From assembly GCF_006345805.1 (NCBI RefSeq), contig NW_021827319.1, forward strand, positions 1-10,863: a DNA stretch of 10,863 bases, given 5' to 3'. The notes under the pieces were generated by a model that saw only the letters and a program-made list of their open reading frames with translations, did not search any database and had not been told where the DNA came from. The position numbers were made by a program, and so were the translations under genes. Positions 1 to 10,863 of the stretch are shown piece after piece (within the stretch, counting starts at the first letter, position 1; each line of letters opens with the position of its first letter). The stretch is from Octopus sinensis (taxonomy: Eukaryota).

Positions 1-137
1 TAGGGTTAGGCTTAGGGGTTACGGTTACGGTTAGGGTTTAGGATTAGGTGTTAGGGGTTAGGGTTAGGGTCAGGCGTTAATGGTAAGGAGTTAGGGTCAG
101 CGTTTAGGGTTGGGGCTAGGGTTAAGGATTAGGCTAG
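1..137 (+). repeat. Degenerate telomere-type (TTAGGG)n array, interstitial orientation, cut by the window start
   Basis: Seven exact TTAGGG copies (12, 31, 51, 58, 64, 91, 104) among variants such as TTAGGC, TTACGG, TTAGGA, TCAGGC and CTAGGG. Unique sequence follows 3' of the G-strand. Confidence 0.85.
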
Positions 138-248
138 ATAACGACTGACTGATAGACGACTGGAGAGACAGCTGACAGAGAGGAAGATAGATAGGTAGAC
201 AGATAGACAGATAAATATGCAGAAGAGACAGACATATATTAAATATAT

Positions 249-284
<36 letters not shown>
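138..284. repeat. Low-complexity GATA/GACA-rich tract ending in (AG)16
   Basis: gatagataggtagacagatagacagata at about 187-214; perfect (AG)16 at 253-284. Confidence 0.85.
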
Positions 285-288
<4 letters not shown>

Positions 289-507
289 GGGGGTGGGGTG
301 GAAGATGAGTTGATAAAGTTAAAGAAGAGACATGGTACTTCAAAGAAAATAATTGACAAAGCAGCAAGTTCTGAAGGAAAGCAACATTCAAGATAATGCA
401 ATATTGGTCTGGGATCATCTTGAGATTATTGGTCCGTTAATGCCAGATAGAGATATAACGGTTACTGCATTCAACCCATCTATTTGAAATGTGTTCTCAA
501 ATTATGT

Positions 508-592
508 ACACACACCACACACACACACGCACACACACACACACACACGCACTCACACACACACACACACGCACACACACGCACTCACACAT

Positions 593-623
<31 letters not shown>

Positions 624-750
624 CGCACTCACACATAAACACACACACACACACGCACACACACGCGCACACACACACACACACACGCACATACACACAC
701 ACACACGCACACACACGCACTCACACACACACACACACACACACACATAC
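508..750. repeat. Compound (CA)n microsatellite with recurrent GC, GCACTC and AT interruptions
   Basis: About 240 bp of CA repeats read directly. It produces the His/Thr-rich pseudo-ORFs 484-798 and 491-823. Confidence 0.97.
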
Positions 751-1148
751 AGACTTGTATGTATTAAAAATGATTTTCAAGGCATTGTTCTATTTTAGAA
801 CTATGACTTGTTTTGTTACATAGTGTATCTATAAAGAAAGCCATGGCGATTTTGTTCTCTCAGCCTATCTGTAAAATTCGAAATCAAATATCAAAGTATA
901 GAACGCTTGTTAAATAGATTAGATGCAATTAAAGTATTTGTAATTACACAAATGAACTGGTGTTCATACATGTGTTTATTCAGAATAAATGGAGTCTATG
1001 CTAGAATTGAAGTATATTTCCCATTGTGGTTTTGCAAGACAGTTCAACTTAGCTTAGCTGGCGTATTTGGAAAAAAATGCCTTACGACACACGAAGAGTT
1101 CGATGCTGTCGTGGCGGTGCTCAGAAGCCGAAAGGCTAATTGACTGGC

Positions 1149-1158
1149 GGTCACGTGA
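1149..1158. promoter_or_regulatory. E-box/USF-CLEAR-type motif GGTCACGTGA in a CpG-rich patch
   Basis: Palindrome TCACGTGA at 1151-1158 at the edge of a CpG-rich segment (about 1084-1158). Motif match only; function not shown. Confidence 0.3.
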
Positions 1159-1253
1159 GAGAAGAGAGAGAAAAAAGGGGCAAAGGAATCAAAGAAAGAG
1201 AGAAAAAGAGGGACAAAGGCACAAAGGGGGATATATATATATATTATATATAT

Positions 1254-1505
1254 CATCGTCATCATCATCGTTTAACGTCGGTTTTCCGTGCTAGCACGGG
1301 TTGGACGGTTTGACCAGGGTCTGGGAAGCCAGGAGGCTGTGCCAGGCTCCAGTCTGATCTGGCAGTGTTTCTACAGCTGGATGCCCTTCCTAACGCCAAC
1401 CACTCCGAGAGTGTAGTGGGTGCTTTTTCGTGCCACCGACACAGATGCCAGGGGAGGCTGGCAGCGGTCACGATCGGTTGGTGCTTTTTACGTGCCACCG
1501 GCATA
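1254..1505 (-). mobile_element. SINE-like repeat (3' part) with (ATG)n tail on the minus strand
   Basis: (CAT)n-like tail at 1254-1269, then GTTTAACGTC...CTGGATGCCCTTCCTAACGCCAACCAC. Internal motif GTGCTTTTT(A)CGTGCCACCG occurs twice. A degenerate second copy lies at 5407-5660. The family assignment to an abundant octopus repeat is from recall. Confidence 0.75.
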
Positions 1506-1791
1506 GGTATCACAGCTGCTATTCCATTTATTTCGATGTTTATGTACTTGACTCAAGCACAGCAGGTCATGTGCCACATATATGGGAGAGTCTTGTAGTT
1601 CGCTTGAAGCATTGTGTATTGTTTCTAAAAAAAATAAAGTGTCTTGAATGGTACAACATTGCACTATAATAACAACCATGGACTATAATAACTGTTATAA
1701 TTTAATCATCCATAGTCTGATACAACATTTCGGAATATACTCGAAATACGACAACACGCACACTGAATGCTCTCAATATACTGATACATAA

Positions 1792-1893
1792 AGGTCGACT
1801 TTAATCCTTTAGGGTCGATAAATTAAGGACCAGTTGAGTACTACACCCTCCCACAAAATTTCGGGCCTTGTGCCTAAAATAGAAAAGAAAATA
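1792..1893 (+). mobile_element. SINE fragment, probably a Nin/Deu-domain-like core plus 3' tail
   Basis: AGGTCGACTTTAATCCTTTAGGGTCGATAAATTAAGGACCAGTTGAGTACT resembles the core CTTTCATCCTT(T/C)CGGGGTCGATAAA...AGTACCAG as I recall it. No 5' head is visible. Confidence 0.5.
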
Positions 1894-1945
1894 GGGATAG
1901 GTAAAGGGAGAGAATTAGACTTTGCTGCTTGGAATATTTCAGGAG

Positions 1946-1998
1946 GGGAAGTACGCATGCGCATTGAAGGTGCTTCTTCCTTGATGTCGATTTCCGGT
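1946..1998. promoter_or_regulatory. Cluster of housekeeping-promoter-like motifs (ETS-like GGAAGT, NRF1/Ewg-like TACGCATGCGCA, ETS-like TTCCGG)
   Basis: TACGCATGCGCA at 1952-1963 is 1 mismatch from the NRF1 palindrome TGCGCATGCGCA. GGGAAGT at 1946-1952; TTTCCGGT at 1991-1998. Confidence 0.35.
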
Positions 1999-2034
1999 TA
2001 AATGTCCTTTGAATGAATTTCTTTTAATCAGCTG

Positions 2035-2058
2035 ATAATAATAATAATAATAATAATA
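2035..2058. repeat. (ATA)8 microsatellite
   Basis: Perfect 24-bp trinucleotide run. Confidence 0.95.
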
Positions 2059-2244
2059 CGTTTATAATACTTAAAATATGGACTTAAAATGCATTTTTCT
2101 ACCAACACACACACATATATAAACAACACTATCCTTTACGAGACATTTGCGTAAGTATTAAACAATGAAAAGATTCAATGTTTTTTTAAAATTTTCGGTT
2201 TTTGGCGCGTAATTCTTTGCTCCTCTTCTCTCTTTTATGAATGC

Positions 2245-2552
2245 GAGATGTCCATGATTTGTGCAAGATTTGGCTGCTATTTCTAGCTACTAAAGAGATA
2301 TGTTTATGATATGTGCGAGATTTGGCTGCTATTTCTAACTATAGAAAAAATATGTCTATGATCTGTTCGAGATTTGGCTGCTATTTCTAGCTATGAGAGG
2401 AGTAAGATGTCTAAGAATTATGTGGGTTTTGGCTGCTATTTCTAGCTATGGAAGTGATCGTATTTGTTCGAGATTTGGCTGCTATTTCTAGCTATGAGAG
2501 TGAGATGTCTAAGAATTATGTGGGTTTTGGCTGCTATTTCTAGCTATGGAAG
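2245..2552. repeat. Minisatellite: six 21-bp cores TTTGGCTGCTATTTCTAGCTA separated by related 25-34 bp linkers (period about 52 bp)
   Basis: Cores start at 2269, 2321 (one G>A), 2373, 2428, 2474 and 2526. Linkers are 31, 31, 34, 25 and 31 bp. Linkers 3 and 5 share AGATGTCTAAGAATTATGTGGGT exactly. Confidence 0.93.
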
Positions 2553-2696
2553 CTGCCTTCTTCCTTCTCCGTCGTTGCCTCTTTAGGTTGTTGTGTGTTT
2601 TAGTTTGAGAAATATTCTCAAATACTTTCCAAAACTGAAATATTTGGAAACCAATTCTTTATTTTAATTTATCCATTGTTTCTCGCTATTACTATC

Positions 2697-2893
2697 GGGT
2701 ACTATTTAAGAAGAATGGTCCCGGTGCGCGCACTCGCTCATCCGCGCCAGCTAGTCGTGACTAGTCGATCCTTACTCTCTGTTTTTGTCTTTTATTTATT
2801 TTGCTAGATAGTCGTTGTAGGATCAACTAGTCACGACTAGCTAGCTCGGATGAGCGAGTGCGTGCACCGGGACCACTCTTCATAAATAGTCCC
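2697..2893. mobile_element. Palindromic MITE-like element with 72-bp inverted arms
   Basis: 2701-2772 matches the reverse complement of 2819-2890 at 66/72, with a 46-bp T-rich loop and GGG...CCC outer ends. No clean TSD seen. Confidence 0.75.
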
Positions 2894-3271
2894 TTACTTT
2901 CGATGTGTGCCCAACCAACTAGTAATTTGTTTCCTCATAACTTTCTGAAATACCTTTTCAGATGGTGTAGATAAGAATTATGCAGGAATTTGTTGTGTAA
3001 AGAAAAGTACAACTGAATGGAGGTTGTGGATAATTTATACACGTCGACTTTATTTCCTCATACCTGTAGATAGAAAATTATGCTGAAAACTATGGCCCAG
3101 TGTTGAAATAGCTCATCCACATTATTCGTTTTGAGGGGGATTTTTAAAAATTATCTTCACAACGCATTTGAAAATGATGGGGGTGAGGCCTTTTATGAAA
3201 AGTTATAAAAATATGATTTGCACCCGTTTTTAAGCCACCGAACACCATTGCAATTCTTGGGTATAATAATG

Positions 3272-3438
3272 GGCGATCCTTCGGGATAGGTACCATTAGT
3301 ACCGGACGTGGCTTTGTTTACATTTCTGAAGATAACAGAAACCCTTTTCTCCCCCCCTAACCCTAACCATGACCCCACCATATATATTAAAAAAACACTT
3401 TCTTGAAATGTTTCCGGTACCTATACCGAAGTTACGCC
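3272..3438. mobile_element. 167-bp non-autonomous DNA element (MITE) with 23-bp TIRs and an 8-bp flanking direct repeat (hAT-like TSD length)
   Basis: Left GGCGATCCTTCGGGATAGGTACC (3272-3294) matches the reverse complement of 3416-3438 (GGCGTAACTTCGGTATAGGTACC) at 19/23. TAATAATG lies at both 3264-3271 and 3439-3446. Internal CCCTAACCCTAACC at 3355-3368. Confidence 0.75.
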
Positions 3439-3936
3439 TAATAATGTATACCGTCGGTAAAGGATGAATTTGTTTTTGTTTGTATAATAAAATATATTCT
3501 TATTTGGCAAAATATTTTTAGATGGTGAAAGAGAAAGTATTAAAGATGAAATAATCGAGAGAAGAAAAAGGGAATTACTTCACCAACGAAACAAAGGGAA
3601 CGAAAGAAGTGGGAAAGGATTAACCAGTAGAAATGTTTTTTCTTCCTTTCCCTAGAATTCCCCTAAAAATCTGCTGCTAAATATAAATCTATATTCGATG
3701 AAAGTAAATTGTCCTTCAAAAAGTGTATTTTACGATGGAAACCAGAAGTGATGAGAGTAATATACGAATATTTCATGAAACCCGTTTGATATTCGATTGG
3801 GCTGTTCCTGTGTGGGTCTCGGCAACTGTATACTCCCGTTAAATTGTCAGCGATTCAACCAGTGTTGTTGATGCAAATGATGACAGCATCCATACACAGG
3901 CTATGGCGATGACGAAGGAAGGCGATGATGTGGAAT

Positions 3937-4160
3937 TACTCTTTTACTTGATTCAATCACCTGACTGTGGCCATGCTAGAGCACCGCCTTTGGACAAATC
4001 GACATCAGGACTTATTTTTTTAGCCTAGTTCTTATTCTGTTGTTGTCTTTTGACGAACCATTAAGCTACGAAGAACTAAATATAGCAACACTGATTGTCA
4101 AGCGGTCACGGGACACAAACAAACACGACGGGCATCTTTCAGTTTCTGTCTACCAAATCC
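3937..4160 (-). mobile_element. 5'-truncated copy of the tRNA-derived SINE family (3' portion)
   Basis: 4128-4160 GACGGGCATCTTTCAGTTTCTGTCTACCAAATCC matches 10204-10236 (ACGATGGGCTTCTTTCAGTTTCCATCTACCAAATCC). 3965-3991 matches the reverse complement of 7945-7971. It is truncated at the C14 run (4159-4172). Confidence 0.75.
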
Positions 4161-4568
4161 CCCCCCCCCCCCAAAAAAAAACAAAACCCTCGGATATGTT
4201 TGCGTGGTATCAAGTACCCTGACCTCCTAATATGTTGCAAACTTCTTATTTTTGTTCGGAAAAGTGGGGAGGGGGTTCGCCCCCCCATCATATCACGGAA
4301 ACATTGGAATTTTTATTTTCTTACTGAAAATCGTGCGAGTGAAAGAATCAAATAATACCGAAGAGATGTTTCATTTGCAGATGAGACTGCGGAAGAGAAT
4401 TGGACCAAAATTTACCATAACTTTTTTTCAGATACAAATGAAAGAATAATTTATCTGACACAAACAGAAAATAATTGATGGAAATATACTTCAGCAATTT
4501 CATGGCCTTTTTTGTGTATGTTTAAAAAGAGATTTTTAACCCCACCCTTTTAAGTGTATAGTACAGAA

Positions 4569-5048
4569 AAAGAATTTGACTCATGGAAGCATAAAAGTTT
4601 TCACAATAAACCGACGGTGAAGATGATGATTATGATGTGCAAAACAAGTACCTGCTAAGAAAATCCACTTTTCCATTCTTTTGTGGGTCAGGCAGAGATT
4701 TTTCTGCCAGATGGCCTTCTTCTTGTGAACCCTCACTAGTTTCCAAGCAAGGTAATATTTCCCCATGTCTGCACATATTTTCAGGTTGATGTGCATTGAC
4801 ATGTGTTAAGTGATATGAAGACACAAAAACACACAGGACTACCTTCTTTGAGTTTCTGTCTATCAAATCCACTCAGATGGCTTTAGATGCTGCTATTAAA
4901 GAAGACCCTTGCTCAAGGTGCTGCTCTGTGAGACTGAACTTGAAATCACATGGTTGGAAATCAAAGTTGTTCAAAATTTTTTTTCCTAATTTTCTTGGCT
5001 TTTCATAATTCATCAATGTTTATTCTTGCTTCATCTGTCATAAAAATT
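4569..5048 (+). repeat. Segment D, copy 1 (480 bp), direct repeat of 9613-10094
   Basis: About 98% identical by hand comparison: about 6 substitutions plus a CAAAA/TTCCTAA replacement. Confidence 0.97.
4836..4968 (-). mobile_element. Old degenerate tRNA-SINE copy inside segment D (duplicated at about 9880-10012)
   Basis: CTTCTTTGAGTTTCTGTCTATCAAATCCACTCAGATGGCTTTAG...GAAGACCCTTGCTCAAGGTGC...GAGACTGAACTTGAAATCACATGGTTGG aligns colinearly with the young copy at 10204-10367. Confidence 0.75.
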
Positions 5049-5406
5049 GTAGTTCCGGCAGTTCTCCATGTGACAACATGACCTACTAGAAATAACAGCA
5101 CATTTCTCTTCAATTTCTCCTATGGGTTACAAATATTGAAGACTGTATTGGATGACATAATTATAGATATAGAATGTTAGAGAAATAGACAAGATGTTCA
5201 TGGATGGAATGTCTATAATCACATGTCTGTTCAGTCAGAACTGACCTGGATCTAAACAAAAAGTTATATTTCTGGAGAAAGACTAATGTTAGCGTCCACC
5301 ATTCTGTAGTTTTATTTTAAAACCCTTACACAATGTGAAGGTGTCAGTGGAGTTGACAAATATCTAAGCTTCACACAAGATTCTATGATGTAAATTTTAA
5401 TAAATG

Positions 5407-5660
5407 AAGTTCATCGTCATCTTTCGACCTCTATACTGGAAGCGATTCGATGGTTTGAGCAGGGCTGGCAAGCTGGGGAGCTGCAGCACACTCCAGTGTG
5501 AATTTTTATGGTTCCGAGAGCTAAATGTCCTTCCTCGTGCCAACCAGCTCACAGTTCACAGGTTGCTTTTATGTGGCACTGCACAGGCAATTTTATGTGC
5601 CACCACAGAGTTGCTTTAATGTGGTGCCACTTTAACATGGCACTGCACATCTGCTTTTAT
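5407..5660 (-). mobile_element. Degenerate copy of the SINE-like repeat at 1254-1505
   Basis: GATGGTTTGAGCAGGGCTGGCAAGCTGGGGAGCTGC...ATGTCCTTCCTCGTGCCAACCA...TTTTATGTGCCACCAC aligns with 1301-1500 at clearly lower identity. Confidence 0.6.
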
Positions 5661-6247
5661 GAAGAAAGGTCCCCAGTGTTTTTTACCACCAGACGGATAA
5701 GTCTGAATATTTCTGCTGTGGAGTACAGGTCTTCTTGGGTACAGCTGGGTGCCAGGCACCTTTGTTTTTATCATATCACCTGAAACTCTCCCATATCTTC
5801 TTGGGTGTCCCACTCCCATCTACTTTGAGAGATTGGCATTTCTTTAGGAGCTGTTAGCATCCAGCTCAGTTGTAAAGGTAAATGTTTGTTTCTACAGTTT
5901 ACCTCCATAGAATTGAATCTGTATTTTTTAAGTAGCCTCTACATTTTACACTGCTGTTTCTCTATAATTTCAGAACATCACATGACAGAAGAAGCATCAT
6001 CAATGTCTACTATGTTTTAAAGACTAAACGAAAATATACAAAACTTGTATAACATTGTTTTTTACAAATCTTTGGAAGAATTCCTGTGAAACATTTGCTC
6101 TGAAATAATATATTTAGCCAAATTTCTGAACATTATTGACTGGAATGTCAAGAAGATAAGACTGTGTCATGATTAAAGTTTGATAAATTTATGAAAGGGT
6201 TGCTAAACAAAGGTCACACTGGACAGAAATACAGCAGCAGAAGTGTA

Positions 6248-6434
6248 TGTAAGGAACAAAGTATAAAAACGAAAGCAAGGAAAATATATTGACTGGGATT
6301 TGAGAGGAAAAGTAAGAGAAAAGGGAGAGAAAAAAATTATAGAATAGATTTTTCCCTTAACACCTCATAAAAGAGATGAGTTCATATGACTGAGGTATCT
6401 GTACAAATCCTTTTTTCGAAAAAGTAACCCAATT
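6248..6434 (+). pseudogene. Decayed N-terminal region and disrupted first C2H2 finger upstream of the ZNF ORF
   Basis: 6385-6452 reads Y-D-STOP(TGA 6391-6393, first Cys position)-G-I-C-[2 nt, one base short]-K-S-F-F-R-K-S-N-P-I-M-H-K-R-I-H. Further upstream there is another TGA at 6290-6292 in a CKEQSIKTKARKIY* frame. Confidence 0.7.
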
Positions 6435-6812
6435 ATGCACAAACGTATTCATATTGGAGAGAAAGCGTACCACTGTGATATCTGTGGTAAATCATTCTCT
6501 AGCTGTGTTCACTTATCTACACACAAATATATTCATACAGGAGAGAGGCCATATCATTGTGATATCTGTGGTAAATCATTCTCTCAAAGTAATGACTTAA
6601 AGAAACACAAACCTATTCATACAGGAGAGAGGAAATATCCTTGTGATATCTGTGGTAAACCATTCATTCAACAGAGTGCCGTATCTATACACAAACGTAT
6701 TCATACGGGAGAGAGGCAATATCACTGTGATGTCTGTGGTAAATCATTCTCTCAAAGTACTGACTTCAAAAGACACAAACATATTCAAACAGGGGAGAAA
6801 GGAAAAGGGTAG
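6435..6812 (+). CDS. Tandem C2H2 (Kruppel-type) zinc-finger ORF, 125 aa, 4 fingers (last degenerate); truncated gene or pseudogene remnant
   Basis: C-x2-C-x12-H-x3-H repeats at an exact 84-bp period (Cys codons 6474, 6558, 6642, 6726). Linkers are IGEKAY, TGERPY, TGERKY and TGERQY. Finger 4 ends HKHIQ (His>Gln). Homology is certain; translation is not. Confidence 0.8.
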   Translation: MHKRIHIGEKAYHCDICGKSFSSCVHLSTHKYIHTGERPYHCDICGKSFSQSNDLKKHKPIHTGERKYPCDICGKPFIQQSAVSIHKRIHTGERQYHCDVCGKSFSQSTDFKRHKHIQTGEKGKG

Positions 6813-8004
6813 TTTCCATGGTTTCTTGTTTGCTATATTTAATATTCCTGTGTTGTAAATTGTGATGAAAGTATTTCCAAGAATTTTATATTTTTTCCAT
6901 TTGTTTATGCAGTTTCCTTTCCATGTTCTAAGGGCCTCTCTACCAAATCTCCTCCTCCTGACAACCCCACACATTATTCTTTCTTAAATATCGCATCCTG
7001 TAATTAACAGCATATTTTACTGTTTATTGTATTTTAAATGCTTCCCTCATTAAATACGTTATACAATGACATAAGTTATTAATTATTTTATACTCAGGAA
7101 TATTGTAAAGTTGTCAAATATGTACATAAACAATGACCCCCCAAATACAAAACAGAAGGGACCACAAAGGAAGAACATGAGGCATAAGTACAGTTTAGTG
7201 GCCCCACACTAGACTGATTCCTTGTTAGCTTTTCAATAATGGTTTCTTTAAATTAAACTTTACAGAGATGAGTTTTCAAATGTCCAGATAAAGATTATTT
7301 TCATAAAATTGATAATAAACATTTTGGAGGAGATTCTTATTCTCAACCCCATCCTGTTTTTGTCAACGCTAACTTCAGAACTTGAGGTAACCTACCAGCC
7401 TCTTGACCAACTATGAATCTGGTGATACACAAGTATTTCTGAGGAGATCAGGCATCGAGGTGGCTCTTGAAGCAGCAGGAGCTGTGGCTGGCTGTGGTAG
7501 TCATGGTCTGCTAGGGTTTGTGGCATGGAAGTTGCAACATCTGTAACAATTGAGGGAGTGCGGTACACAAGTTGGGAAGAAGGCTACAGCGATACTATAA
7601 GTATGGTGGTGGCAATAATTTTTGACAGTGGGGAGCACCTCTATATATATGGGGTTGCGTAAAATTATGTGTGCCTGTATATATGTATGTATATCTATAT
7701 GTATAGATTTGAAAGTAATTCCATACAAATTGTTTATATTTAGGGAATGAAATTTGGATTACTTTGAAAGACGTGCATTTAACTGCAATTTATTTGATGT
7801 TATAATGGTGATATCATAATTTATAAAAAATCATCTCACATGGACAAACATCTATATACGCCACACGTACACATACACACATAATAAATTCAAAATCTGG
7901 AAGAAATTATTCGTATCAAAAATATCACAGAGGTAAGTTATCTCAAGGCAGTGCTCCAGCATGGCTGCAGTGAATAAAAGTTTTAAACAAAATGAATGCA
8001 TGAA

Positions 8005-8026
8005 AGAGAGAGAGAGAGAGAGAGAG
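8005..8026. repeat. (AG)11 microsatellite; its mirror is (CT)18 at 10705-10740
   Basis: Read directly in both arms. Confidence 0.9.
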
Positions 8027-8186
8027 ACATAAAAAGCGTGGTAACAAGTAGAGAGAGACTGATGGTGATAAAGAGTAGATCTAAAAGTTAAGTTATTTCT
8101 CGTAGATTAAATATTTTTTATTATTATTTCCAGATGACTTCCTCTTTGAGATGATAATTATTTTTGCTTTGTTTTCCCTATTTATA

Positions 8187-8392
8187 GGCGCAGGATTGGC
8201 TGTGTGGTAAGTAGCTTGCTTACCAACCACATGGTTCTGGGTTCAGTCCCACTGCATGGCACCTTGGGCAAGTGTCATCTACTATAGCCTCGGGCCGACC
8301 AAAGCCTTGTGAGTGGATTTGGTAGATGGAAACTGAAAGAAGCCCATCGTATATATGTATATATATGTGTGTTTGTCCTCCCAATATCGCTA
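8187..8392 (+). mobile_element. tRNA-derived SINE with Pol III A and B boxes and a (TA/TG) tail
   Basis: A-box-like TGGCTGTGTGG (8197-8207) and B-box-like GGTTCAGTCCC (8240-8250). 164-bp core at 8187-8350, then ATATATGTATATATATGTGTG. Five related copies are in the window. Confidence 0.88.
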
Positions 8393-8471
8393 GAAAAAAT
8401 TCACCGAAACAAATTCTGCCCGACCTGTGTGAACAAGGAATGGTGGATGCGAAAATGAGAATGGTAGATTC

Positions 8472-8982
8472 TCTTTCCTCTGTTTGCAAAGCCAACTAAG
8501 AAGACATTTCTATCCCTTTCCCTTTTATTCTCTCATTATCCATGTTGTGTCCATTTAGGGTAAGGGTTAAGCATAGGATTACTATGCTTAACCCTCTCTT
8601 CTTTTCCACAAGGTCAGCCCTCTCAAATTTCCTCCTGGCTCATGCTTTCATTAAAAGGGTCGACTTACAAGGAAAACATAAATGGCAACAAGTCTCACTT
8701 CCTATTGCAGCCCCTCTCCGGAATGTACCCATTTCCGTACACTATCTCCATTACACCTACATTCATTTGACTGTCAACCATATGATGGGTCATGTTAGAT
8801 GCTGTGCTGACCGCTGCTGCAAAGGAGAGTATATCCACTGACAGCTTTTCAGTATGTCCCAAAAATCATATCTCATACCCGCCACCCCCAAGTTTTCATG
8901 ACAAGTTAGGGTCTGGAATACTCCAAACTGATGTATGACATGTCACTGGTTCGAATTAGTCCACAAATGCTTTGTCGTCAAT
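8472..8982 (+). repeat. Inner inverted-repeat arm B (511 bp; partner 9107-9617)
   Basis: 9 substitutions and no indels versus the reverse complement of 9107-9617 (about 98%). The unique spacer is 8983-9106. Confidence 0.98.
8563..8595. other. Perfect 14-bp hairpin AGGGTTAAGCATAG-gatta-CTATGCTTAACCCT (mirror at 9494-9526)
   Basis: Stem 8563-8576 / 8582-8595, 5-nt loop, preceded by TTAGGG-TAAGGG. Confidence 0.9.
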
Positions 8983-9106
8983 GCTGCACTTTCCCGTATC
9001 ACCTGTTTCAACACACCTGTAATATATATACAGACTACACCACTTTAATCCCAAGCAATGGCGAGTATCTCTACAAGTATATGTATATATATGTGTGAGT
9101 GTATAT

Positions 9107-9617
9107 ATTGACAACAAAGCATTTGTGGACTAATTCGAACCAGTGACATGTCATGCATCAGTTTGGAGTATTCCAGACCCTAACTTGTCATGAAAACTTG
9201 GGGGTGGCGGGTATGAGATATGATTTTTGGGACATACTGAAAAGCTGTCAGTGGATATACTCTCCTTTGCAGCAGCGGTCAGCACAGCATCTAACATGAC
9301 CCATCATATGGTTGACAGTCAAATGAATGTAGGTGTAATGGAGATAGTGTACGGAAATGGGTACATTCCGGAGAGGGGCTGCAATAGGAAGTGAGACTTG
9401 TTGCCATTTATGTTTTCCTTGTAAGTCAATACTTTTAATGAAAGCATGAACCAGGAGGAAATTTGAGAGGGCTGACCTAGTGGAAAAGCAGAGAGGGTTA
9501 AGCATAGTAATCCTATGCTTAACCCTTACCCTAAATGGACACAACATAGATAATGAGAGAATAAAAGGGAAAGGGATAGAAATGTCTTCTTAGTTGGCTT
9601 TGCAAACAGAGGAAAGA
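9107..9617 (-). repeat. Inner inverted-repeat arm B'
   Basis: Reverse complement of 8472-8982. Confidence 0.98.
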
Positions 9618-10094
9618 ATTTGACTCATGGAAGCATAAAAGTTTTCACAATAAACCGATGGTGAAGATGATGATTATGATGTGCAAAACAAGTACCTGCT
9701 AAGAAAATCCATTTTCCCATTCTTTTGTGGGTCAGGCAGAGATTTTTCTGCCAGATGGCCTTCTTCTTGTGAACCCTCACTAGTTTCCAAGCAAGGTAAT
9801 ATTTCCCCATGTCTGCACATATTTTCAGGTTGATGTGCATTGACATGTGTTAAGTGATATGAAGACACAAAAACACACAGGACTACCTTCTTTGAGTTTC
9901 TGTCTATCAAATCCACTCAGATGGCTTTAGATGCTGCTATTAAAGAAGACCCTTGCTCAAGGTGCTGCTCTGTGAGACTGAACTTGAAATCACATGGTTG
10001 GAAATCAAAGTTGTTTTCCTAATTTTTTTTCCTAATTTTCTTAGCTTTTCATTATTCATCAATGCTTATTCTTGCTTCATCTGTCATAAAAATT
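9613..10094 (+). repeat. Segment D, copy 2 (482 bp), lying between B' and A'
   Basis: Direct copy of 4569-5048. It shares AAAGA (9613-9617) with B' and ATT (10092-10094) with A'. Confidence 0.97.
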
Positions 10095-10161
10095 CTCATT
10101 TTCGCATCCACCATTCCTTGTTCACACAGGTCGGGCAGAATTTGTTTTGGGGAATATTTTC

Positions 10162-10367
10162 TAGCGATATTGGGAGGACAAACACACATATATATACATA
10201 TATACGATGGGCTTCTTTCAGTTTCCATCTACCAAATCCACTCACAAGGCTTTGGTCGGCCCGAGGCTGTAGTAGATGACACTTGCCCAAGGTGCCATGC
10301 AGTGGGACTGAACCCAGAACCATGTGGTTGGTAAGCAAGCTACTTACCCCACAGCCAATCCTACGCC
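10162..10367 (-). mobile_element. tRNA-derived SINE, tandem copy 1
   Basis: The 164-bp core 10204-10367 is the reverse complement of 8187-8350 with 3 substitutions. Confidence 0.88.
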
Positions 10368-10544
10368 TATATATATATATACGATGGGCTTCTTTCAGTT
10401 TCCATCTACCAAATCCACTCACAAGGCATTAGTCGGCCCGAGGCTGTAGTAGATGACACTTGCCCAAGGTGCCATGCAGTGGGACTGAACCCAGAACCAT
10501 GTGGTTGGTAAGCAAGCTACTTACCACACAGCCAATCCTGCGCC
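10368..10544 (-). mobile_element. tRNA-derived SINE, tandem copy 2 (177-bp period)
   Basis: (TA)n at 10368-10380, then the 164-bp core 10381-10544, which is the reverse complement of 8187-8350 with 3 substitutions. Confidence 0.88.
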
Positions 10545-10699
10545 TATAAATAGGGAAAACAAAGCAAAAATAATTATCATCTCAAAGAGGAAGTCATCTG
10601 GAAATAATAATAAAAAATATTTAATCTACGAGAAATAGGTTAACTTTTAGATCTACTCTTTATCACCATCAGTCTCTGTCTACTTGTTACCACGCTTTT

Positions 10700-10743
<44 letters not shown>

Positions 10744-10863
10744 TAGTATATGTATTATCTTTGATGCATTCATTTTGTTTAAAACTTTTATTCACTGCAG
10801 CCATGCTGGAGCACTGCCTTGAGATAACTTACCTCTGTGATATTTTTGATACGAATAATTTCT

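Follow-up and report, generated by a model that had tools for sequence, protein, structure and literature searches.

The window analysed here is the whole 10,863-nt stretch of Octopus sinensis DNA at positions 1-10,863 of NW_021827319.1 (GCF_006345805.1, forward strand), and all coordinates given below are those of the window. Downstream of a short zinc-finger (ZNF) remnant it carries a nested inverted duplication, in which two segments, A and B, are followed by a single-copy spacer and then by their inverted copies, B' and A', with a further segment, D, lying between the inverted copies. The order of these elements, A - 9 bp - B - 124-bp spacer - B' - D - A', is base-exact. The elements were found with a repeat finder and measured by global alignment, and the junctions between them were read directly off the sequence. 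The parts of the rearranged segment are listed here together with the source of D; L001 and L004 denote two paralogous loci of Octopus vulgaris that are described further on, and SINE stands for short interspersed nuclear element.

7902-8462, forward strand: arm A in its original orientation, with a (GA)n tract at about 8004-8027 and one SINE-like unit of about 180 bp at 8179-8366; colinear with L001 and L004
8463-8471, forward strand: the 9-bp link between A and B, GGTAGATTC, found in both paralogues of O. vulgaris, and with D in its place on the inverted side
8472-8982, forward strand: arm B in its original orientation; only 2 of 511 sites differ in the comparison with L001 and L004
8983-9106, forward strand: the 124-bp spacer, single-copy in the window, with TA/TG dinucleotide repeats at its end
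9105-9108, no strand: J1, the fold-back junction (9106/9107), where AT forms a 2-bp microhomology and beyond which neither paralogue is colinear
9107-9617, reverse strand: arm B', the inverted copy of B; all 7 substitutions unique to this copy fall in 9428-9548, the part nearest D
9613-9617, no strand: junction J2 between B' and D, with the 5-bp microhomology AAAGA
9613-10094, forward strand: D, a templated insertion copied in direct orientation from 4569-5048, with a perfect 13-bp tandem duplication at 10014-10039
10092-10094, no strand: junction J3 between D and A', with the 3-bp microhomology ATT
10092-10863, reverse strand: arm A', the inverted copy of A, cut off by the end of the window, with two tandem 177-bp SINE-like units and 34 bp that are missing from A
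4569-5048, forward strand: the source of D, unique sequence with an old inverted SINE-like fragment inside it at about 4823-4964

The original prediction, made from the sequence of the window, had claimed this nested order with three novel junctions, and every element of it was reproduced by the repeat finder and the alignments. The microhomologies that it placed at J2 and J3 can be read directly from the sequence, and the replacement of the 9 bp at 8463-8471 by D on the inverted side was confirmed in the same way.

The two members of each pair are closely similar. B and B', which lie 124 nt apart, differ by 9 substitutions in 511 nt and by no insertions or deletions (indels), a divergence of 1.76%. 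A and A' match in three collinear inverted blocks, with 8 substitutions over 561 aligned nt (1.43%), and their match is ended by the edge of the window, so that the visible inverted arm totals only 1.8 kb. D is 482 nt long and differs from 4569-5048, in direct orientation, by 8 substitutions in 480 nt and by one 2-bp indel (1.67%). Chance comes nowhere near explaining repeats of 480-560 nt that are 98% identical. Pooled over all pairs, the substitutions comprise 15 transitions and 10 transversions, and there are no other small indels. Because the differences are substitutions without small indels, they are not long-read errors.

Larger differences between the arms accompany these substitutions. 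A' holds a second 177-bp SINE-like unit (10191-10367 followed by 10368-10544) where A holds one, and 34 bp beside the (GA)n microsatellite are present in A' and missing from A. In addition, GGTAGATTC is missing from the B'-D-A' side. The three junctions all lie in cis within 1 kb and have microhomologies of 2, 5 and 3 bp, the overlap at J1 being the AT shared by 9105-9106 and 8983-8984. The A/B junction lies 3.4 kb from the source of D, and the point of insertion 5.0 kb. A perfect hairpin with a 13-bp stem, AGGGTTAAGCATA-loop-TATGCTTAACCCT, is found inside B (8563-8595) and inside B' (9494-9526).

Because the arms differ by D, by a 177-bp unit and by 34 bp, the structure is not a single-molecule fold-back formed in vitro. 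It could be supposed that all three junctions were made in vitro on one molecule, for instance by strand-displacement amplification or by template switching of an end-repair polymerase, and amplified libraries typically contain inverted chimeras with microhomology and short offsets (PMC6218980). Copies of this kind would, however, equal their templates, whereas 25 substitutions of natural spectrum, a 177-bp unit difference and a 34-bp indel were found, and this origin is very improbable.

Two technical candidates were also tried and rejected. A one-molecule chimera (a missed adapter, a template-complement read or amplification switching) is out because the arms differ by an insertion, two indels and natural-spectrum substitutions. 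A turn-around of a de Bruijn or k-mer graph through the self-complementary (TA)n is out because the spacer would then be inverted too, and it is not.

The two paralogues in O. vulgaris are revealing of the ancestral state of this segment. Both lie on a 12-Mb contig of assembly GCA_951406725.2, 6.9 Mb apart and in the same orientation; L001 (CATOCA020000001.1:2085995-2122525) was reached through a ZNF protein match and L004 (CATOCA020000001.1:8949676-9005223) through DCLK1-like exons joined to the ZNF in the annotation. Window 4440-9108 aligns colinearly with L001, the two having diverged by about 1.2% in substitutions, after which L001 continues into other sequence, and L004 is colinear with the same interval of the window. 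Neither contains B' or a second D. More specifically, both run A-9bp-B-spacer-(TA)n and then into unique DNA, with a (TA)n tract of roughly 65-85 bp, and J1 of the window sits where this long tract begins in the paralogues. Since L001 and L004 share the plain order, the ancestral arrangement is A-9bp-B-spacer-(TA)n, and all three junctions are derived.

Distances among the window, L001 and L004 are about equal (1.2-1.4%), with 24, 28 and 34 lineage-unique substitutions, respectively, over about 4.4 kb. The window is thus a third copy, or else a divergent allele, within a region that has undergone segmental duplication. Its homology to both paralogues ends sharply at 4439/4440, with L001 and L004 homologous to each other for 721 bp further left, and window 1-4439 matches only short repeats in the four loci that were fetched. 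This boundary may mark the edge of an independent duplication, or else belong to the same copy as a fourth breakpoint. The other two fetched loci, O. sinensis contigs reached through DCLK-like exons (L002 and L003), include only the downstream part of the duplicated region, without A or B. Matches between L001 and L004 are intermittent along the approximately 29 kb of L001 that was compared, at about 91% to 98% identity.

Two features of the three forward copies deserve mention. When the window is compared with L001 and L004, the right end of A together with B (window 8364-8982) is near-invariant: only 2 of its 619 bp differ, where about 12 differences would be expected (p=0.0005), and the two paralogues do not differ from each other anywhere across it. 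Either interlocus gene conversion that homogenises the forward copies or a constrained element may account for this invariance. The SINE-like unit of about 180 bp, which has a TA/TG tail, varies in its tandem copy number: there is one in A, two in A', three in L004 (6952-7511) and five in L001 (11790-12745). Dozens of copies of it at 82-92% identity are found in both orientations in neighbouring loci, and scans for tRNAs and against Rfam gave no name for the unit.

The claim that D is a templated insert was borne out by its structure. D is a single-copy segment with its source at 4569-5048 and no target-site duplication; 9 bp were replaced instead. It has no terminal repeats, and its ends fall off repeat boundaries, inside sequence that is continuous in all three forward copies. 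Each O. vulgaris locus contains one high-identity match to D, continuous with its flanks, and only the old SINE-like fragment within it is repeated. The absence of a target-site duplication and of terminal repeats, together with a single high-identity copy per locus, shows that D is not a mobile element. Over about 300 bp its interior does not differ from the source within the window, and one site inside this stretch is common to D and the source against both paralogues; one site is likewise common to A and A' against both paralogues. The identity and the shared site that are specific to D and its source tie the copy to this locus. At 10014-10039, D contains TTTTCCTAATTTT twice and perfectly, a site at which L001 has one unit only, and L004, like the source, an 11+13-bp form that has diverged. 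Because this 13-bp duplication differs from the source, D is at these positions unlike a copy of the present-day source.

A transposable element would explain the segment in one of two ways, with A-B and B'-A' as the long terminal inverted repeats of a foldback-type element or with D as a mobile-element insertion. The region is indeed rich in SINE-like units, one of them in A and an old fragment in D, but A-B-spacer in both paralogues is continuous with unique flanks and has no inverted partner there. Together with the replaced 9 bp, the ends of D and its single match per locus, this leaves such an explanation effectively refuted.

We favour the reading that the segment is a real, not very recent rearrangement that arose by a single multi-step series of template switches, of the type known as break-induced replication mediated by microhomology (MMBIR) or fork stalling and template switching (FoSTeS), and that began at the (TA)n tract; we put the probability of this reading at about 0.5. 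Working from the observed architecture, junctions, ancestral order and substitution pattern, we infer that the structure exists in the animal and that one event produced it, along with the direction of that event and the behaviour of the polymerase. A fork or broken end would have stalled at the start of the long, hairpin-prone (TA)n tract (9106), and its 3' end, pairing anew over 2 bp with the complementary strand 124 nt back, would have copied B in reverse for 511 nt. A switch at AAAGA (5 bp) would have moved synthesis to a template 5 kb away, from which 482 nt were copied as D, and a switch back at ATT (3 bp) would have resumed 9 bp past the exit point, with A copied backwards from there onward. 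Slippage would afterwards have removed 34 bp and one SINE unit from the original arm, and divergence between the copies would have reached 1.4-1.8%.

Several lines of evidence support this sequence of steps. The near-equal divergence of A from A', B from B' and D from its source (1.43, 1.76 and 1.67%) fits a single event. Both paralogues have a long (TA)n exactly at the point of fold-back, which supports an event triggered by (TA)n. One chained event would be expected to leave a rare templated insertion lying 0.5 kb away from a fold-back; any other origin would make their closeness a coincidence. Finally, the substitutions are ordered relative to the junctions, and this too was counted in favour of a single event.

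Two separate real events could instead be envisaged, in which D was inserted at the A/B junction in one copy and the fold-back or inverted duplication occurred at another time. Different histories are suggested by the flanks of the junctions, which are dense in substitutions unique to the copy at J2 and J3 and have none on the B' side of J1. If D had come before the fold-back, however, both arms would be expected to contain it, yet A-9bp-B is without D; if D had come afterwards, a lower divergence from its source would be expected, yet the divergence found is equal to that of the arms (1.67% against 1.43-1.76%). Since two rare microhomology events within 1 kb would also be required, such a history is distinctly unlikely.

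The substitutions were examined by polarising each difference with L001 and L004, and were distributed between rearranged copy and original as follows:

B' and B: 7 unique to the rearranged copy, 2 to the original
Right end of A' and A: 3 unique to the rearranged copy, 0 to the original
D and its source: 6 unique to the rearranged copy, 1 to the original
Left part of A' and A: 3 unique to the rearranged copy, 0 to the original

Thus 19 of the 22 polarised substitutions are on the rearranged copy and 3 on the original (binomial p=0.0009), so that plain neutral copying of the adjacent arm does not describe the rearranged copy. Because the 34 bp and the extra SINE unit of A' are also in L001 and L004, A is the arm that changed. 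Among the copy-unique changes the ratio of transitions to transversions is 9:10, against 46:39 for the divergence within the family, with no difference between the two (p=0.62). This natural ratio shows that the differences are evolutionary and not read errors.

The positions of the changes are uneven. B and B' are identical over 273 bp in their middle (largest-gap p=0.01), and D and its source have an identical run of 300 bp (p=0.002); with clustered changes counted as single events, the combined p for location at the edges is 0.003. Of the 19 copy-unique changes, 16 are no more than 200 bp away from J2 or J3 (p=0.0025, for a threshold set post hoc), and other statistics gave p=0.03-0.11. The changes form dense patches: B' has 7 in the 190 bp next to J2, D has 5 in the 80 bp next to J3, and there are 3 in 9 bp about 60 bp into A'. 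Unlike these flanks, the 321 bp of B' adjoining J1 are without any copy-unique change, and the two differences between B and B' near J1, 7 and 49 bp from its edge, are both on the original arm. No variant-bearing 11-mer recurs meaningfully in the window or the four loci, as micro-templating of the patches would have left.

This clustering at the edges may reflect low-fidelity synthesis round each switch, or a later gene conversion that homogenised the interiors and did not reach the ends of homology; the same picture would be expected from both. Replicative repair is error-prone. The more specific suggestion that the dense patches are a fossil trace of low-fidelity synthesis by a repair polymerase, laid down at each template switch of one germline event, is nevertheless an unlikely one. 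The patches have a density of 3-6%, far above that described for MMBIR-type events, in which junction-proximal mutations are few per junction (PMC4352052). If it were true, the patches would be a natural record of how long error-prone synthesis runs before it is handed off to an accurate polymerase. In either case the edge-clustered substitutions could inform on the fidelity of repair synthesis or on gene conversion between short repeats.

A number of observations weigh against the single template-switch event that we favour, the excess of changes on the rearranged copy, the clean flank of J1 and the density of the patches being among them. D and A' keep states that seem older than those of the adjacent originals. 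Neither copy in O. vulgaris has the fold-back. The window, which begins in a telomere-like array and ends inside A', may be a small contig in its entirety. The divergence of the arms, 1.4-1.8%, is at the level of the published heterozygosity of O. vulgaris (1.22%, PMC10700109), and the caveat of the original prediction that two haplotypes may have been mis-joined therefore holds. Furthermore, an offset of 124 nt on the opposite strand at a dinucleotide repeat resembles the fold-back artefacts of nanopore sequencing (PMC12870357). The equal divergence of the pairs fits a single event, whereas the unequal branches (19 against 3), the ancestral states in A' and the clean flank of J1 do not fit one in any simple way. 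The derived junctions, the microhomologies and the nearby template agree with replication-based repair of the MMBIR/FoSTeS type, but the unequal branch lengths are not what a plain local copy would predict.

The main alternative, possible though less likely than the single event, is that the structure is partly real and partly an artefact: the insertion of D, with J2 and J3, would be real in the other haplotype or in a very close paralogue, and J1 would not be genomic, a long-read fold-back chimera having turned the assembler at (TA)n and led it back through that other haplotype. Besides their closeness to the heterozygosity of O. vulgaris, the arms diverge by nearly the same amount as the window, L001 and L004 do from each other (1.2-1.4%), and the copy arm, in which 19 substitutions are unique and ancestral indel states have been kept, resembles a lineage of its own. 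The overlap at J1 is only 2 bp, the flank of B' there is unmutated and the fold-back is in neither paralogue; the start of the window in a repeat array and its end inside A' are like those of a short dead-end contig. Nanopore libraries, moreover, hold 0.55-0.6% of fold-back reads, which re-align less than 200 bp away on the opposite strand and whose breakpoints are enriched in dinucleotide repeats (Heinz, Meyerson and Li 2026, PMC12870357), and the offset here is 124 bp, at a TA/TG repeat.

However, such an explanation calls for two rare and independent occurrences lying 0.5 kb apart: a templated insertion of 482 bp in inverted orientation, with microhomology, and a chimeric read that came through assembly. 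The arms of the nanopore artefacts come from one molecule and should be identical, whereas here an insertion, two indels and 17 substitutions separate them; because the arms are not identical, an additional haplotype switch by the assembler would be needed. The usual template-complement artefact is a zero-offset palindrome with identical arms and not one with a clean 124-bp genomic spacer. Differences between the arms occur as close as 7 and 49 bp from the edge of J1, and the contig is therefore not simply one chimeric molecule. The sharp break in homology at 4439/4440 would be left unexplained, and the ordering of the substitutions relative to the junctions also speaks against it. If J1 were an artefact, only the 482-bp templated insertion would be biological, and the locus would illustrate how a heterozygous, paralogue-rich region and one fold-back read can mimic a textbook rearrangement.

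The anatomy of the segment can be compared with that of known systems. Human constitutional fold-back inverted duplications (Hermetz et al. 2014, PMC3907307) likewise consist of inverted and direct copies round a single-copy spacer, with 2-8 bp of inverted microhomology at the junction of spacer and inversion and with some insertions templated nearby, as in the 2 bp and D found here. In contrast, the human spacers range from 766 bp to 70 kb and the duplications are of megabase size with terminal deletions, compared with a 124-bp spacer and 1.8 kb visible in the window. Because at least 2 bp of microhomology was reached by 13% of simulated junctions in the human study (PMC3907307), the 2-bp AT at J1 is weak evidence.

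Rearrangements attributed to MMBIR/FoSTeS, including those with a duplication-inverted triplication-duplication structure (DUP-TRP/INV-DUP; PMC2621351, PMC4352052, PMC11293582), are similar in having several cis junctions close together with microhomology at each, inverted and direct segments templated within a few kb, and point changes near the junctions. Multi-junction rearrangements at PLP1 and MECP2 have matching anatomy (PMC4352052, PMC11293582). They differ in that those cases are de novo, with parental controls, and have fewer junction-proximal changes, whereas the present one is old (1.4-1.8% diverged) and is compared with paralogues. In yeast, short templated inverted duplications at double-strand breaks are also primed by fold-back on microhomology and extended by templated synthesis (PMC11724301); they measure about 5-34 bp, against 480 to more than 770 bp for the segments here.

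Only one boundary of the inverted copy lies in the window. This bears on origin-dependent inverted-repeat amplification (ODIRA), put forward by Brewer and colleagues, in which template switching of a fork at closely spaced short inverted repeats reportedly gives rise to inverted copies. The triplication that ODIRA is said to predict is inverted, surrounds a replication origin and is bounded at either end by short inverted repeats that already existed.

If the single template-switch event is real, the segment would be a cleanly resolved and evolutionarily retained complex rearrangement in a cephalopod, with its ancestral state given by two paralogues and its trigger, a long (TA)n tract, readable from the sequence. 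Replicative mechanisms known from human disease and from yeast would then also shape the segmental duplications of the octopus.

The coding content of the region is small. One feature lies upstream of the rearrangement:

6435-6812, forward strand: C2H2 zinc-finger remnant of four 84-bp finger units, with an in-frame stop immediately upstream

The open reading frame (ORF) of this remnant is 99% identical to the first 125 residues of an O. vulgaris protein (P0001), which the annotation fuses to DCLK1-like kinase exons 10-16 kb downstream; the fused model is probably chimeric. The ZNF remnant, A, B, the spacer and the DCLK1-like exons all lie in the matching region of L001 and L004. It had been proposed that the inverted arm might copy the ZNF and so contribute to the growth of cephalopod ZNF clusters. 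This link is unsupported: the ZNF is a four-finger remnant, and the O. vulgaris paralogues are in the same orientation, 6.9 Mb apart and without the fold-back. In octopods, C2H2 ZNFs are scattered over many chromosomes and form a few clusters (PMC9795677). Look-ups for exact products with the ORF of arm B and with the ZNF ORF found nothing, and a homology search of a protein database with the 99-aa ORF of B (8542-8841) found no relative. As this ORF has no relatives, B is not a known coding sequence or called gene.

The left part of the window contains several repeats. A degenerate (TTAGGG)n-like array, matching at about 70%, occupies 1-133 from the first base, with its G-rich strand pointing into the window; it may be an interstitial or subtelomeric telomere-like tract, or a sign that the contig was broken in a repeat. 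A tandem array of 52-bp units at 2236-2552, also readable as a 98-bp period, has about 6 copies with 73-82% matches. At 2698-2893 a 75-nt inverted repeat, 91% complementary and with a 46-nt loop, matches MIR7125, a plant microRNA family, below threshold on both strands; the repeat is probably a hairpin like that of a miniature inverted-repeat transposable element and not a microRNA. An (AG)n tract lies at 249-285, and a long imperfect (AC)n microsatellite of about 244 bp extends over 508-751, where the long ORFs that cross it are repeat artefacts.

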